Assembly: GCA_037447605.1 (NCBI GenBank)
Contig: CM074809.1
Span: 362,689 to 426,688 of the forward strand
Length of the DNA stretch: 64,000 nucleotides
Source of the DNA: Zygnema circumcarinatum SAG 698-1b
Lineage: Eukaryota > Plantae > Zygnematophyceae
Direction of reading: 5' to 3'
Positions 1 through 8,820 of this stretch are shown piece by piece. The notes below the pieces were generated by a model. It did no database searches and had not been told where the DNA came from. It was given only the letters and a program-made list of their open reading frames with translations. The position numbers and the translations under genes were made by a program. Positions within the stretch are counted from its first letter, which is position 1. The number at the start of each line of letters is the position of its first letter.

Positions 1-597
1 AGCCAATAATGTGCTAGTTCGGGGGAGGCAAGCTTCACTTCGCATGGCACTCGTGTTAATAGCTTCCTAGCTTTGTTCAAAGTGAACGAAGTAAGCGCCG
101 CAATCTTGTTTATGTACTGAAAAGAAACTTCGAGTGTGTGTCTCGAAAAGGGACCAGAATGATTATCCCAGTCAACTCGGTGTTGTACCGTAGCCAATGG
201 GTTTGCATTCATCCCCGGGCGTAAAGTGCTTAGTTCCCTTCGGTCACCCTTGTGGCCGTCACCCGCAATTCGCGCAATCGTGTGTGTGTTCCAACATGAG
301 AAATGTGTCCTCACGGCTAACTTCCGTTTCACCCCAATAAGGAGCTCCCTTTCCCGTATGTTCATTCGGTACTCGTGTAATTGAGGGGAAGATTCGCGAA
401 AACTTCTCTCGGAAGCCTTCCCTAATTCCACATAGGCTGTTGTACCTATTCGCGATAAATCGCTACACTTCCACGAAAGACTACCCTTCTCCGGTAGCTT
501 CACGCGACCCACGTAGAGGTGCGCCCGGAGGGGTTTATTGCACAAGGCTCCTGCAAGGTTAGATAAACCAGCGAATACCGGATGCTCAGCCCCGCAC
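1..597 (-). mobile_element. Group II intron in nad4, 5' portion (position equivalent to nad4i461); continues beyond the window start
   Basis: Coding similarity ends at ...CCA ATG TT, followed by GTGCGG, the group II 5' consensus GUGYG. The read-through PMLCGAEH resembles the land-plant nad4 exon 1/intron 1 boundary as I recall it. The insertion lies after nt 458 of this CDS, which equals 461 if the reference CDS is one codon longer. Confidence 0.9.
1..597 (-). CDS. Putative intron-encoded protein (maturase) N-terminal region, in frame with nad4 exon 1
   Basis: 199 consecutive stop-free codons continue the nad4 frame through the intron to position 1 (LCGAEHPVFAGLSNLAGALCNKPLRAHLYVGRVKLPEKG...EVKLASPELAHYW). 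No RT motif is reached inside the window. Confidence 0.65.
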
Positions 598-1055
598 AAC
601 ATTGGAATAAGAACACTTTCAAAAAACACGTAAAATAATAGCAAATCCAGCATACAAAACACAGCTATCATGAAGGATTCTAAAATCAAAAACGCTATTA
701 TGTATTCTTTCTTGTAATTTTGAATGGTAACCCAACCTACCAAAATGCAGATAGGTACCAAAAAGGTAGTCAAAATTACAAACAATAAAGAAATACCGTC
801 TAATCCAATGTAAAAATTGATATTAGAATAAGGAAGCCAGTTGATAGTTTCTACAAACTGAAAATTTGGAGTAGAATTATCAAATCGAATCCAAAACAAA
901 AGTGAATACACAAAAGTAATCAAAGTAATACAAAAGCCAACACTGCGTATTAGTCGTATTCTTGAAGCCGGAATAGCTAAAACGAGAATAGCTCCAAGTA
1001 AAGGCCATAAAATTAGAGCACTTAGGCCAGAAAACAAAGCACTAATAAATTGCAT
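598..1055 (-). CDS. nad4: Mitochondrial NADH dehydrogenase subunit 4, exon 1 (organellar sequence in a nuclear context)
   Basis: Manual translation from the ATG at 1055 gives MQFISALFSGLSALILWPLLGAILVLAIPASRIRLIRSVGFCITLITFVYSLLFWIRFDNSTPNFQFVETINWLPYSNINFYIGLDGISLLFVILTTFLVPICILVGW...EYIIAFLILESFMIAVFCMLDLLLFYVFFESVLIPM, the recognisable plant mitochondrial Nad4 N-terminus. It is 458 nt, AT-rich, with no stops or frameshifts. It is missing from the ORF track because the frame has no stop inside the window. Confidence 0.97.
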
Positions 1056-1076
1056 ATAGATGGTTGTGTTCCAAAT

Positions 1077-1078
<2 letters not shown>

Positions 1079-1114
<36 letters not shown>
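1079..1114. repeat. (GA)n microsatellite at the mitochondrial/nuclear junction
   Basis: Perfect GA run 1079-1107 followed by CGAGAGA; it lies only about 23 nt upstream of the nad4 ATG. Confidence 0.95.
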
Positions 1115-1368
1115 TTGCACAGTACACAGCGTTTGCAGGTGTACCAGGGTGCGCATAGCATAGAAGCACAAAGAGAGGCAGCCGCATTCTTTATAATGCC
1201 CGAAACAGGACTTGCACACTCGGAGCATCTTTAATCACTACATTTTGGTGACATTAATACAACAAAAATTTGAGATCTTGTAAAAGGAAAGCTACAGCAC
1301 ACAGTAGATACTCAATCCTCAATTTTTCGGCAGGTTAGGAGGCAATCAAATGGTTTCAGAATGATTGC

Positions 1369-4300
1369 CTGCAAGTTTGAAACTTGGCCTCCTGCCAATG
1401 AGGCAGGAGGGGCCAACCGGAGGTTGTGAGTGAGTTTGTACTCATCGGTTGGTCGTTCCATTCCTCCAGGGCGAACAATCTGCAATGTAAAAACATCCCT
1501 AATTGATTATCTTTTCTAGGAGGGATGCAAGACAGGCAGACATATCTGCAAGGTATCTGCAGTCATCAACCATATTCCCTGCAACGATGGTGAGAGAAGG
1601 GAAGAGAGCGAATGAGGGGGACAGGGAAAAAGTGGAGGCAGCAGAGTTTATGACGATGCTCCAAGCTGCATGAATTCTAGAAAGCAGACCAGTTTGCTTC
1701 AACTTGCAAGAAATGAGAAGTCTGCACTTACCATTTCTGGAAGCACAACAAGCACAACACATCACTCTAACACTCCCACACACTGATATGACATGCCTTC
1801 CAGGGCAAGCCATGTTTCCTCAAATCAATACTGGTGACTCAAGCTACATATGGAAGCTCACCGTAAATGCAATCCCGCTATTCTTCAGCTCTTTTTCCGC
1901 TTGTGCTTTCCAGATGAGCACCCCCCAAAAGAGGCTGCAAGCACGAAAACACGAAAGAAGGGGGTCGTCAATATGACTGCACTCCACAGGGTTTTTTTGT
2001 CTTCGTGTGTTTTCAAGGTGATGTCGCCCACTTGCAAGTCGCGAGCAAAAAAAAAGACATACATCCTACTTGGTGACAAATAAGCTTGGATATATACAGA
2101 GACTGAATAGTGGGGGTGTCAAGGGAGGGCGGGGGGGGCAGGAAATGGAAAGATGGAAGAGAAATGGGAACGAGAACAGAGAAAGAGCGGGAAAGGGGAA
2201 GAAGAGGAGGAAGGGGAGAAACTCCATCCTGCCGGATGGAGTGAAAAAAATGTGATCAACCAATATGAGAAAGACTGGCATGCAGTGTACAAACTGACTG
2301 TACATCTGACAATACAGGAACGTTCAATATACGAATATTATGTAATTCCCCCACAGCGTTACATTGGCAAGAAAACGCAGGCGACTGATGAGGAGGTGCA
2401 ATCTGAATTCTCATGCAGCCAATGTGAGAATGGGGCACGTACTTCAACAAAGACGCAGGGAATCCAAATTTCTCCGTTCCAAGCGACGAGACCAGCACAA
2501 ACTGGTTCACATCTAACTCCTTCGCTGTAGATGAAAAAACACAACGCCCATGTGAGAGTTTCCTAGTGGGCTTCCACCTACAAGTGTTACAGCCTATGCA
2601 TGTATAACCAGATTCGAGTGGATGCCCCACAATACAAATTTGTAAATACTGCACCCCCTAGAGATGTTTGAAGGAACGGAGCGAGAAAGTCGAATCGGCA
2701 TAAACAATCACGCGGTATTTTAGATCAGTGCCACGATTGAGAGTGGCACTTGCATTTTACAAGAAGCACGATTCATAGCCGGTCAACTAACAGGCACATT
2801 CTATCAAGCTTACAGAATTACCTGCTTTGATGAGGTTCTTTGTTGCTTGTCCATCGATGCGGTAAGGGCCAGTTATATTCAAGGCATCACTCTCACTTGC
2901 TCCGATTGTACAAACAACCTTCCCTGCTGCACCAATAGCCTCCTCCAGAGTTTCCGGATTCTCCAAATTAACCTCAATAATCTCTACTTGCTTGCGTTTC
3001 CCACCAAATAACTGCAACATAAACACAAGCTCAGGAGAATGTTTTAGATGAAGAACGAAGAAGGAAAAGCAAGCAGTTGAGACGTTTTCCAAACTATGCA
3101 ACTGCAGAGGCTAGCACTTGGGAAACCAAAACTGGGTTGGAACGACCAACAGAAGGACAGCAGTTTTATTTCAAACATTCACTCGTTTCGAATAACAGAT
3201 GGTACATGGACTCGGTCAAATCCCCTCAAATGTACTTCAAAATTTCCCAAGGAGTAAATTAATGGAAACAAAGCCAATTTCAGAGCCAGATTGCACATCA
3301 TATAGCCCTCCAACATTGGCAGCCAAACTTGGAAACTGGCTGGCAGAGTTACGCATAAAGAAGTGGAAGCCAAAAACAGCGAAACTAAAATTTGCATGAC
3401 AGAGAACAGTGAGGTCCTCGCCAAAGCACAATTACCTTCCCCAATAGTCCGCTCCCACTTGATCCCTCAATGACCTGTACGGTACAAGCAACAGTTAGAC
3501 TATTTGAGGATTGAAGCGAAGGAGGAACACTCTACTCGTGGTCAACTCGTGGATGGTATGCATTTCAACTGCCTCTCAGGACTTCCAGTATTGCGCTAGG
3601 CTACAACATGCATACAGTAGTGAACAGGAAGAAGCATGGTGCGTGCTGGCAAGGAGCAGGTGTGTTCCATACATCGGCAAACTCCGCCTCCGCCATTTCA
3701 GGATTCCGCGTACCGGCTCGCACCTTGAATCCCATCTTGACCAATTCTCTGCAAGAGTCAGACATACGAGAAGCCACCTCAGCCTGCAAACTTGACAGAT
3801 ATAAAATTGAGACAAAGCAACAATGAATCTGATTTTGTAAAACCAGCCAAGATTCATACAGAGACATTGTTCGGTAGTGATAACATCAAGGATACAGGAA
3901 GGCTGAGCCATGACTACACAGACGATGAATGTGACAGCAATTAGCTGAGTAAAATGTAAACCTTTCGTGACAGTGTAGAGCATGCGAGAAGACTGACTGA
4001 CTGCACACACCTGACAAGACGGGATCCAACTCGTCCTGTTGCTCCGGCCACAAAGACGAGACTGTCATCACGGGGCAGTTCTCGAGCCGGCCTATCATCA
4101 GCTCCACCAAAGAGAAGCTTCAGTGTTCCAGCTAGTTTCTGCGTCCCTCCCATTGACAGTTTCACCGTACCGCTGTTGCTCGGAGCCGGAGTATTCACTA
4201 CCTTACTCTCACCAGGCTTCTGTCGAAGTATACCTGAATACACCGATGCGGCCATTTAACCATCTCATATAGGGTTAGTCAACCAAGAGTTCACTCAGCA

Positions 4301-5220
4301 TGCTCAGACCTATTCTTAGCTAGTCGAGTGGAGGGCCATATCGTAGGCAGGAAAGGTACCAAAAAACGATAGAGGCCTAGTTGTTGATTTAACCCTAGAC
4401 ACCGGTTGCATCTCCAAAACCAGAGCTCCAATAGAAAACCTAATGCTTGGATGCCCTAACATACATCTTTCGATCTGAGGACGATGTGTTTGAACTTATC
4501 AGTCCCAAGACTCAAAAAGTGTATGTGCACGATTCAGAAACGTTAAAGGCAGGAGATAAAGGCATAGCTTATAAGAGGATATACAATTAAAGAAAAAAAA
4601 AGAACTGCTGTACATCTTCCAGACGGGGTTGGAGCTATTATAACCCTACTCCAACACGCAAAATGGTGGATATGCATTGAGTCAGGGTCGCTCCCGATTG
4701 AAAAGAGACCTTTCAAAACACCTACCGTTGATGTTGACGAGAAGGTAAGGATAGTAAAGAAATTTTACTATGGATTATTTGATCTGGATATGATATGTCA
4801 TTGTCAAGCAATGCAACAACAGCGCCTTTCCACTTTGACATATCGCATTAACCCTAATAACCCGTTTCATGATAAACTTCAAAACATCTTGACAGAAACA
4901 TCTGTGTGCACTCCGAGTCACCGATTCCAAGGTGCTAATGGTGGTTTTGCTGGACAAATCCTTCACTTCGCCTCATCAAATTTTCGGCCACTTTACTTTT
5001 GAACGAGCATCTCACCTCCAAGCTTGGCTGAAACAAGGACCGATCCTTGATTGCTTCTCAGACTCCTCGTCCTGCTCTTTCCTGCAACCTCCGCCAGCTT
5101 CACGTATCCACCATAGCTTGGCCTAGGCAACAGAGCTCCCTTCTTCGACTCCGCCCCAGCCAGCAGCAAGTCTCCTGCTCCCAGCCCTGCGTGGGCTCGC
5201 GCCATGGCGGGGCACGACAT
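1369..5220 (-). CDS. TIC62: Tic62-like plastid NAD(P)-binding Rossmann-fold protein, multi-exon, 3' end absent
   Basis: Exons: 5220-5016 (transit-peptide-like; start codon uncertain), 4233-4011 (VFVAGATGRVGSRLV), 3748-3673 (ELVKMGFKVRAGTRN), 3011-2822 (IGASESDALNITGPYRIDGQATKNLI), 2524-2443 (FVLVSSLGTEKFGFPA), 1934-1862 (LFWGVLIWKAQAEKEL), 1479-1369 (IVRPGGMERPTDEYK...GGQVSNLQ). The motifs match plant Tic62. Introns are GT-AG, with a probable GC donor after the last visible exon. Confidence 0.9.
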
Positions 5221-5472
5221 CGTGAGCAAGCTCCCTCAGGGGAGCCTTCCTGCCTCAGCTATGGCTGGCGCTCCTCCCCTTTCCCTTTCCTCCTGTCCCA
5301 GTGGATGCCAAACCTTGCAGCAACGAGCGAGAGCGAGAGTGAGAGCGAGAAAGGGAGAGGGGGAGAGAGGGAGAGAGAGAGGAAGATGGAGAGAGAGGCG
5401 GAGAGTGAGAGAGAGAGGGCGAGGACGCGTGGCCCCACAGCGCGCATCCATGCAAGATCGTTGCAGTCAGTG

Positions 5473-5560
5473 ATTGGTCCGTTCGGATAGGCTCGGACTT
5501 TGGGCCAATTGGAGCGCGCGACAGCTGCGGCCAGACGGCCCCGCAATGCGCCACGTGTCC
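5473..5560. promoter_or_regulatory. Candidate bidirectional promoter core between the Tic62-like and pTAC16-like genes
   Basis: ATTGG at 5473, palindromic CCAATTGG at 5505-5512 and G-box GCCACGTGTC at 5550-5559. These sit between GA-rich putative 5' UTRs of two divergent genes whose starts are about 725 bp apart. Confidence 0.55.
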
Positions 5561-5945
5561 CTGCTGCGCTCCAGGAGGCTGCAGCTTGCAAGAAGAGGGA
5601 GAGAGAGGGAGGGAAAGTGGAGGGAGAGGGTGAGGGAGAGGGTGAGGGAGAGGGAGATAGCCGCAAAGTGTTGTGGTGAGAGCGGTGGAACAGACGTTAT
5701 TGAAGGATTGAGCTGTCCTGTTGACTGAAGGAAGTTTTCAGGTGTGGCGCATTGTTGGAAACGAGCGCAGTTAGTTATTGAAGGAGGAGAGAGCGGTCGG
5801 CAAGGAAGGAGGAGCGGCGGAGTAGGAAGACAGGAAGTTCAAGTGAGGAGCTCAAACAGGCTGCATTGCTAGATACTTTAAGGTTAGAGATTTAAATCGG
5901 GATTTTTCGGCATCTAAAAGGGACCCGAGAGGTGGAACTGTGGCC

Positions 5946-8820
5946 ATGGCGAGTGCTACCGCGCATGCTATTCTGCCAAATGTGCACTGCTTGCGCCGGG
6001 AAGCTCTGCATGAGAGCAAGACCTCTACTGAATTTTCTAGCAGAGTAGCTCTTGGAGGTGCGGAAAGCTTGTCGAAGAGGCAGATCTCTTTCCAGAAACC
6101 TTGCGATCAAAAGTTTGCGCTGCACGTGCAAGCTGCAGGAAAGACTACGAAGTTTCAGACTCAAGCCTCGAAACCAAAGAAATCTGAAGAAGATGAAGCA
6201 AGTACTCGTCCAGCAATTAGCAGTTTTTTGGCTTTAAGGCCTCCCACCTTGACTGCTCTCCAGCTCTTTGGCCGGCGACAACTGGATTCCAACACGGTTT
6301 TTGTAACAGGGGGCAGTGGACTAACGGGAGCGCGCATTGCATTAGAGCTCTTGCATGAGGGATTTCGAGTGAGGGCGGGAGTCCCTGATTTACGCGAGGC
6401 GCAAGAGCTTGCACAAATTGCTTCTCAATATCAGGTATTTACAACAGAAATAAATAAGGAACGGCATTGTTATGATAAGTTCACTCAATGAAGTCAGAAT
6501 GAGGAAAAAGTTTGAGCGGATCGATTTAGAGTGCGAATCCTTTAAGCATGTACACTACCCAAATGATGAAAGTTACAAATGGACAGTTTGCATTTTCAGA
6601 CATTAAGATCGGTAATAGCTTGTCGAACTATAGTTACACTTGTGCTAGTCTTATGATTATAGTTGTAAGGATGACTAAAGATGTGTACGATGGATAACTT
6701 CTTACTCGTAGCTATGGTTGTTGCTGTGATATGGCGTACTGCGCAGCTAATCAGTGCGGAGGAAGCAAAGCGTCTGAATGTGGTGGAGTTCAACGTGAAT
6801 GATACAGAGCTAACGGCAAAAGCGATAGGCAATGCAGGAAAAGTGGTGGTCACTATTGGCCCCTGCGAGCTCGGACCTACAGGGAAGATCACAGTTAGCG
6901 ATGCTGCAAAAATATTCGAGGCAGCACAACTCGCTAAGATCAAAAGTTTTGTCCTCGTGTTGGAAGCTGGTGGCTTCGGATCGCTAGCTAAAGGACCAGA
7001 GGGCTTCTTTGCAAAGCTTTTGTCATTTCTCAACGTGTTCAAGAAGAAGGACGAGGTTTCTCTCTCGGAGTTGATTGAACGGATAGTTGATAGTGAAGTG
7101 GATTATACTCTGATACAGACGGGGGCCTCTGAAGGAGTTCTTGACTCCTATGGGGCCACACACAATATCGTGATTGGCCCGGAGGGAGCAGCGCTCGGGG
7201 GCAAGGTGTGGACAGAAGCCATTATGCTCGAAACGAAAGATGCCTTCCGAGTTTTCTGCTGCATATTTCTGACTAGTTGAAGCTTGTCCGACCTTTTGCA
7301 TGGTGGAGGTGCTGGGACTTCGTCTTTTCAAGATCTGTCAAAACATGACATGCATATGACTACTTTTTTGATTTTTAAAATTCCTGTTTTTTTCATTCAG
7401 ATTTCAAAACTTCAAGTTGCATCAGTTGTAGCAAATTCTCTCGCCAATCCTGCCGCCACGGAGAACAAGGTATAGTAGTAAAAACTATTTCCTGAAAGAA
7501 ACTTCTGAAGAATTCTGGTTTTCGTGGCACTGAACAGCATAACTAGCACTTGGTTAGGGTGGCCTCACCGCTAGCTTAGAATGATATTATGATGATGTGA
7601 CTTTTGACATACAGATCGATATGCAACTATTTCGCTATTTGTATGTTTGTGCTACCATTGTAAAGCAGCTTTAACGGTGAATGTGAGCTGCTTCTGACCT
7701 TGGAAAAGCTGGATTTTGGAAAAGCTGATTTCTGACAGAGTGGCTCTTGCCGTTGTTGTCAGATTTTTGAAATCTCCGCCAGCATGGATGCACCTGCAGT
7801 GCCTTTGGTGCAGCTTTTCAGGTATGCTTATCAATGTCTAGTCAATTTTACGTTCAGTGGCGTGTAAGCTTGCTATTCCAGGGCTCGTCTGAAGAGGAGC
7901 AAATGGAAGAGATATAATTTGTTTCACCTTGGGGCTTGAGCTTCGTACTACCATAGTCAGAAGTAAAACCTTGTAGCTGTTGAGCTGTTGATTGAAAAGC
8001 GTTCTTTCTCGTGTGCAGTACTGTAGAAGTAGATGGACGAAGAGCTGCAGCAGCAGAAGCAAAAGCATCAGCTGAAGCTGAAGAGAACGAACGACAGGTA
8101 CGGGCTCAGGCAGAAGAGGCTGCCAAGCTTGCCGTGGCAGAAGCTCGTGCTGCAGCAGAGGAAGCAGCTGCATTGGAAGCAGAGGCTCGCCAAGTTGCAG
8201 GTAAGAGTGCAAACGATTGATTACGTTAGAATGAGTTTTTTAGAGGAACGGGAAGTAGACTGGCTTCTTGTTATGTGGTGATAGTCGTTCGTTCAGAACT
8301 GGCGACAATATACCAAATCATCGCTCAGGTATTGCTCAGCCTTTGTGTAAATCTTGCAGCCGAGGAGGCCAAAGCAGCTACCCAGGCAGAGAAGGCGCTT
8401 GCAAAAGCAAAGGCGGTTTCTGCATCAGTCGAGGAGCTGACAACATCGTTAGCGCAAGTTGAAAAGGGGGCCGAGCCTGCCCCCAAAGCCAGTCTTCCAT
8501 CCTTCAACTTTGGAAACCTTGGAGCTAAGGTTCTCTCCTCTGTTCAGTCCGGTTTGGCAAAGGAGAGCGAAAACGGGAACGCACTCACCTCTGCAGAGCC
8601 TCCGGTAACTGCTGAGAAGCCTGCCCCTTCAGCTGCAGAACCCCCCACTGGGCTGAGAAAGCTGAGGCAGAGAGGTGAGAGGAGAAAAGCTGCCCCTCCC
8701 CCTCCTCCCCGTCCTGCTGCACCAGCAGCACCCTCCGCACCTGTAGAGAAGAGGAAACTGCTGGGAGTGTTTCAGCAGGAGACAACCTTTGTAGATGCCT
8801 CTGATGCCGGGGATTTCTAG
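5946..8820 (+). CDS. PTAC16: Plastid transcriptionally active 16-like NAD(P)-binding protein, 6 exons
   Basis: Exons 5946-6434, 6747-7205, 7401-7469, 7763-7821, 8019-8200 and 8360-8820, with compatible phases. Motifs TVFVTGGSGLTGARIALELLHEGFRVRAGVPDL, KAIGNAGKVVVTIG and the C-terminal GVFQQETTFVD match plant pTAC16. Confidence 0.92.

Follow-up and report, generated by a model that had tools for sequence, protein, structure and literature searches.

In yeast, the introns aI1 and aI2 of cox1 encode RT/maturases whose reading frame continues that of the upstream exon, translation passing through the 5' domains of the ribozyme, and proteolytic processing of these proteins is known. Mitochondrial pieces that have ended up amid nuclear DNA (NUMTs) are commonly found within introns.

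For the group II intron nad4i461g2, sizes of 3.1 and 5.7 kb have been reported in Coleochaete and in Zygnema circumcarinatum, respectively, together with long maturase frames (family F17) which run on unbroken from the upstream nad4 exon in both algae, whereas only small maturase traces are left in this intron in land plants (Zumkeller and Knoop 2023, PMC10012718). That nad4i461g2 bears a maturase in Z. circumcarinatum is thus already known, having been published in 2023. In the same study, the F17 maturases are placed in one group with matR; nMAT1/2 are grouped with family F03, and nMAT3/4 with family F10 (PMC10012718). For these strains, the assemblies of the nuclear and of the mitochondrial genome have been described by Feng et al. 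2024 (PMC11096116), a paper in which the term NUMT does not occur.

The window analyzed here is a stretch of 64 kb of the Z. circumcarinatum assembly, the first bases of which carry, on the minus strand, nad4 exon 1 and the beginning of this intron, next to a nuclear gene. The features assigned in it are as follows, "L011" being a metagenome contig of a Zygnema relative, P0001 the deposited Z. circumcarinatum nad4 protein and X4 a DNA sequencing run.

1..597, minus strand: group II intron nad4i461g2, first 597 nt (5' GTGCG plus domain I), frame open, continuing past the window start
598..1055, minus strand: nad4 exon 1, 458 nt, ATG at 1055 (protein match to P0001, spliced contig at 598)
1056..1080, minus strand: mitochondrial nad4 leader, ~25 nt (homology to L011 fades at ~1078-1082)
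1079..1114, no strand: (GA)n microsatellite at the junction of insert and nuclear DNA (from the sequence)
1115..1368, minus strand: remainder of the host intron of a Tic62-like gene (22.4x depth in X4, skipped by the mRNA contig)
1369..1479, minus strand: Tic62-like exon adjoining the insert (mRNA contig, weak NAD(P)H-binding match)
1862-1934, 2443-2524, 2822-3011, 3436-3472, 3671-3748 and 4011-4235, minus strand: upstream Tic62-like exons (2.1-kb mRNA contig)

Exon 1, its splice site and the open frame

The translation of exon 1 matches the nad4 protein of Zygnema circumcarinatum at 152 of 153 residues, and the sole difference is the codon that is split by the intron, which is inserted in phase 2. 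The usual 5' end of group II introns is GTGCG, and exactly these letters are found at 597..593, the end of the exon reading ...CCAATGTT|GTGCGG. The length of 458 nt for exon 1 is explained by the alga having one codon fewer at the N-terminus.

Sequencing reads were considered as Logan contigs from four runs of the same organism, which were compared with 4,500 letters of the window. In the runs X15 and X16 a 1,268-nt contig spans 598..1071. At one end it continues with 794 nt that are unlike the window and are the true mitochondrial upstream region, and at base 598 it is connected to a stretch of 30 letters, the reverse complement of which, T ATT ATA ATT GGT GTA TGG GGG TCA AGA, translates to FIIIGVWGSR, which is the start of nad4 exon 2. 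Because base 598 is joined to exon 2 in these contigs, the 5' splice site 598|597 is used in vivo; X15 was guessed to be RNA and X16 to be DNA, and spliced contigs are present in both. Contigs without splicing occur as well, covering 1..627 and extending 176-190 nt beyond the window start.

A detail of the deposited nad4 protein may be mentioned here. P0001 (GenBank/UniProt) has the sequence ...VLIPMIIIGVW... at this place, but ...VLIPMFIIIGVW... is obtained from the spliced contigs, in agreement with other streptophytes, and the annotated boundary between exon 1 and exon 2 in P0001 seems to drop one codon (F).

Starting from the nad4 ATG at 1055 (minus strand), the translation of 1-1055, which begins MQFISALFSGLSALILWPLLG, passes through 351 stop-free codons down to base 1. 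The intron part of this frame amounts to 199 open codons when the codon split by the junction is included, and the original prediction that the nad4 frame is free of stops from GTGCG to the window edge therefore holds. The remaining two minus-strand frames of the same stretch contain 10 and 14 stops, and the plus-strand frames 6, 6 and 12. On the basis of base composition, the probability of 0 stops in 198 codons is 4.8e-5, to which the value of about 7e-5 given originally comes close, and the frame remained open in 0 of 20,000 dinucleotide-preserving shuffles. The open nad4 frame through the intron is not a product of chance. It had also been pointed out that the frame is missing from the program-made list of open reading frames, which is correct and is due only to the omission of ORFs that run off the window end.

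The 198 intron residues had no match in Pfam. When the 351-aa translation was used in a word-based protein search, no read-through ORF of the same species was obtained, and two exact-pattern scans of metagenome contigs for sequence past the window start returned no match.

The intron in land plants and the frame in algal relatives

For comparison, mitochondrial loci were reached via read-through ORFs, namely those of a moss (L008-L010), the exon of which is 99% identical to Funaria, of spinach type (L005-L007) and of two further taxa (L001-L004). The junction ATGTT|GTGCGG is common to moss (L008), spinach (L006), L001 and L004. By blastn, the window and the moss loci L008-L010 are 71% identical across 932 nt, a stretch made up of the exon and 446 nt of the intron; for the intron alone, ~446 nt of domain I align to moss with ~70% identity, and conserved intron blocks are common to all five aligned sequences. 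As judged from the sequence, the same insertion site and the ~446 nt of homology to the moss and spinach introns identify the window intron as an orthologue of land-plant nad4i461g2, and the view that the intron at i461 is shared with land plants has thus been borne out by the identical site and by the alignment of domain I.

The moss and spinach introns both carry the Rfam Intron_gpII domains V/VI at their ends. With lengths of ~0.8 kb (<800 nt) in moss and ~1.6 kb in spinach they are too short to hold a maturase, and in the land-plant orthologues compared the read-through frames close after 59-147 codons. For these orthologues, the original statement that the land-plant intron carries no ORF is supported.

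Within the window, Rfam yielded nothing at gathering score over the entire 64 kb, and only a chance miRNA-like match on 1..1200 with E up to 10. For domain I of this intron there is no corresponding Rfam model, and domains V/VI are situated beyond the window. A search by eye for EBS1/IBS1 pairing found no consistent register across the taxa.

When the 198 intron residues were used in an exhaustive profile search, six proteins were matched. The best match was an ORF of 861 aa from Coleochaete scutata (P0121), with 60% identity over residues 18-159 (E 5e-30), which contains the domains RVT_1, Intron_maturas2 and GIIM. Its cluster mate P0127 (1,019 aa) begins inside nad4 exon 1, and the frame of this protein leads from exon 1 through the translation of domain I into an RT (with YADD), domain X and an HNH-type tail. 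When P0127 was in turn taken as the query of a word search, no Z. circumcarinatum orthologue of 560-1783 aa was listed, and the search led to the protein P0131 on contig L011 (2509-7092), which belongs to a relative of Zygnema.

P0131 comprises 1,527 open codons starting at the nad4 ATG. It is 81% identical to the window at the amino acid level, the nucleotide identity of L011 being 85.6%, from window position ~1081 down to ~98; positions 1..97 do not align to L011, though they are at mitochondrial depth. Domain X (Intron_maturas2, residues 1374-1470, E 1e-17) lies ~4.1 kb from the nad4 ATG in L011 and is 58% identical to the domain X of Coleochaete. The RT part shows 38% identity to the Coleochaete RT, with HGEK where Coleochaete has YADD, and no match of Pfam RVT_1 was obtained in P0131 even at E 10. 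In addition, the protein stops soon after domain X and is without an endonuclease. The loss of the RT site and of the endonuclease, together with the good conservation of domain X, suggests that the protein of the Zygnema relative is probably a splicing factor only. A search of L011 with Rfam for the 3' end of the intron found none, as the contig ends first, and the ORF is followed only by hairpin repeats.

Of the RT and domain X motifs for which the fused ORF was to be searched, Coleochaete has the RT with YADD and domain X, the relative has domain X and lacks YADD, and the window shows none of them. In Z. circumcarinatum itself, the continuation of the frame into a maturase rests on PMC10012718 and on the relative with its 85.6% nucleotide identity.

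Two further observations concern the relatives. In the MetaClust proteins P0122 (507 aa) and P0125 (655 aa), the read-through translation of domain I of nad4i461g2 passes on into RVT_1, and they represent further lineages in which the RT of nad4i461g2 is retained at least in part. On L011, long near-perfect hairpins, which are miRNA-like in Rfam, are located at 7366-7508 and 7576-7749 just after the intron ORF, and a similar palindromic insert is present within the ORF at residues ~360-420 of P0131. These hairpins look like mobile palindromic repeats which swell the intron.

The divergence between the window and L011 differs between exon and intron. In exon 1 the mismatches at codon positions 1/2/3 number 14/6/40 (p 1e-7), whereas in the first 500 nt of the intron they number 27/25/27 (p 0.95). 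Both indels between the two sequences are 3 nt long, and no stop arises. The flat distribution in the intron, combined with indels of 3 nt only, indicates that the amino acids of domain I are free to change, with the frame being kept open. The contrast between exon and intron shows cleanly that over ribozyme domain I selection acts on frame openness only, and this pattern is the one expected if ribosomes must pass from the nad4 ATG through the 5' part of the ribozyme to the maturase.

Depth, junction and host gene of the nad4 piece

In the DNA run X4, the depth is ~5000-5400x over 1..1063, with 0 differing letters in the deep contigs, and 22.4x across 1120-4500. The jump in depth and the absence of differences mean that 1..~1070 is letter-identical to the high-copy mitochondrial genome, and that the remainder is single-copy nuclear DNA. 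Upstream of the ATG, the homology to L011 ends where the (GA)n run begins. The stretch 1072-1119 is bridged by no contig in the four runs, because the aligner masks the repeat. Genes for tRNA, rRNA or other mitochondrial RNAs were found nowhere in the 64-kb window, either by the tRNA search or by Rfam at gathering score.

Some minor contigs of run X4 should be noted separately. Two contigs of 60 nt, at 821-880 and 852-911, have one differing letter each and a depth of ~9-10x. They could be sequencing errors that recur at such depth, or stem from a further nuclear copy, or, in case mitochondrial reads were used in polishing, show the actual letters of the nuclear copy. Other contigs, at 190-229, 465-495 and 878-925, match the nad4 piece partly and then continue with unrelated letters on both sides, which suggests either that the genome holds more fragments of the same mitochondrial region at other places or that mitochondrial subgenomes are rearranged.

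The Tic62-like gene has the same orientation as the nad4 piece. Its exons were examined singly, and their NAD(P)H-binding match is weak. The stretches skipped by the mRNA contig end in CT..AC, corresponding to GT..AG introns on the minus strand. This contig exits the window at 1369 with ~1,049 nt still to come and would continue in an exon that lies before base 1. Since it skips everything from 1368 down to base 1, the host intron, with its first base at 1368, would contain the entire nad4 piece. The nuclear location of the piece rests on the assembly and on this host mRNA contig.

Beyond the Tic62-like gene, a second gene is arranged head to head with it, and has its first exon at positions 5940-6491 (plus strand). 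This gene starts with a GxxGxxG motif of NAD(P)-binding type (VFVTGGSGLTGARIALELL); possibly the two genes are a pair of paralogues. Between these two NAD-binding genes, 5200-5700 is GC-rich (~60%) and of low complexity, with SL/ER/GE-repeat ORFs on both strands, and is probably simple sequence of a promoter or 5' UTR.

Origin of the open frame and comparison with known systems

Our analysis makes it very likely that 1..~1080 (minus strand) is a young NUMT, consisting of nad4 exon 1, preceded by ~25 nt of its leader and followed by the first 597 nt or more of nad4i461g2, which lies in an intron of the Tic62-like gene and whose open frame was inherited from a maturase-bearing mitochondrial original. 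Being spliced out together with the host intron, it would have no function in the nucleus, and the openness of its frame would be a legacy of that original. In the mitochondrion, a maturase gene situated in domain IV would not need a start of its own. By analogy, ribosomes would start at the nad4 ATG on unspliced RNA and travel across the 5' splice site and through domain I as far as the maturase, which may then aid the splicing of its own intron, as in yeast cox1 aI1/aI2 and other group II maturases, and the fusion product may be cleaved later on.

The original prediction that this lineage retains a maturase-bearing intron consequently stands for the mitochondrial gene, given the Coleochaete protein P0121 and its cluster mate P0127, the protein P0131 and PMC10012718; the copy in the window, on the other hand, is in all likelihood a NUMT, and the finding had already been published. 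Indeed, the published distribution of nad4i461g2, to which the prediction had referred for a check, includes frames continuous with the exon and encoding a maturase in this very species (PMC10012718). The suggested bearing on the origin of the plant nuclear maturases nMAT1-4 is not supported by PMC10012718, which groups F17 with matR and not with nMAT1-4.

There are other ways in which such a stretch might arise. The nad4 piece could be an assembly chimera, in which mitochondrial reads were wrongly joined to a nuclear scaffold at the (GA)n run and no real chromosomal insert exists. This would agree with the 100% identity of the stretch to very deep mitochondrial DNA, with the lack of Logan contigs bridging 1072-1119 in four runs and with the low-complexity run located exactly at the junction. 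However, the same nuclear gene appears to lie on both sides, as the mRNA contig leaves at 1369 with ~1,049 nt left, so that sequences would have to be wrongly joined twice within a single intron to produce such an artefact; we give this explanation a small but real chance. Much less probable is that the frame is open for reasons unrelated to translation, as a side effect of base composition or of the conserved RNA structure in domain I. The amino acids of domain I are indeed without selection at the protein level (27/25/27), Pfam is empty on the 198 residues, and in the land-plant orthologues, too, 59-147 codons are read through until a stop is reached. Yet none of the 20,000 shuffles was open, the two other frames contain 10 and 14 stops, both indels relative to L011 are multiples of 3, the frame reaches RT and X domains in Coleochaete and in the Zygnema relative (the RT of the latter being degenerate), and PMC10012718 likewise describes a maturase frame for this species.

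Least probable of all, and only slightly below the preceding explanation, is that the nuclear copy is a working or nascent nuclear maturase gene and a step towards the nuclear maturases. Streptophyte mitochondria use the standard code, and the copy is undamaged and in sense orientation within a transcribed gene, all of which would suit such a role. It sits, however, in an intron that is spliced out, and a promoter of its own and a targeting peptide are absent.

As to what the locus may mean, we suggest only tentatively, and consider it rather doubtful, that the Zygnema nad4i461 protein is an intermediate of maturase decay, which is still translated as a fusion with exon 1, has grown through insertions to over 1,500 residues, has lost the RT site and the endonuclease and has kept domain X, standing between the complete mobile form of Coleochaete and the ORF-less intron of land plants, and that sense-oriented nuclear copies show how pieces of such a gene reach nuclear transcription units. 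The features that would mark the decay intermediate, namely the missing RT site and endonuclease and the retained domain X, are seen only in the sequence of the Zygnema relative. The wider significance is small, since the maturase-bearing state has been published (PMC10012718) and intronic NUMTs are common. For annotators, it is advisable to mask 1..~1080 as mitochondrially derived, lest it be called a nuclear nad4 or maturase gene.

Compared with known systems, land-plant nad4i461g2 shares with the window the insertion site, the 5' end GTGCGG(A/G)GCTGAGC and ~446 nt of domain I (~70%), but the introns compared are short and their read-through frames are closed after 59-147 codons. The yeast introns aI1/aI2 share with nad4i461g2 the layout of an RT/maturase fused in frame to the exon; their proteins are active reverse transcriptases and the introns are mobile, whereas the protein of the Zygnema relative is without YADD and endonuclease. 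The matR of seed plants (mat-nad1i728g2) is found among the matches of the search with P0127, which include matR proteins such as a Mayaca maturase (36% identity). According to PMC10012718 its intron belongs to the same family F17, and it resembles the protein of the Zygnema relative in its degenerate RT part and conserved domain X. It differs in its host gene and site, and it is not fused to the upstream exon. With NUMTs the locus has in common a mitochondrial piece amid single-copy nuclear DNA, here within an intron, and a sharp jump in depth at the edge; in relation to typical NUMTs there is nothing unusual about it except that it is very young (0 differences seen) and has its junction at a microsatellite. 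Closest are the mitochondrial nad4i461g2 introns of Z. circumcarinatum and C. scutata (F17), the published Zygnema intron being of the same species, gene and site as the window. In comparison with this 5.7 kb mitochondrial intron, the window holds a truncated nuclear copy, of which exon 1 and the first 597 nt are visible.
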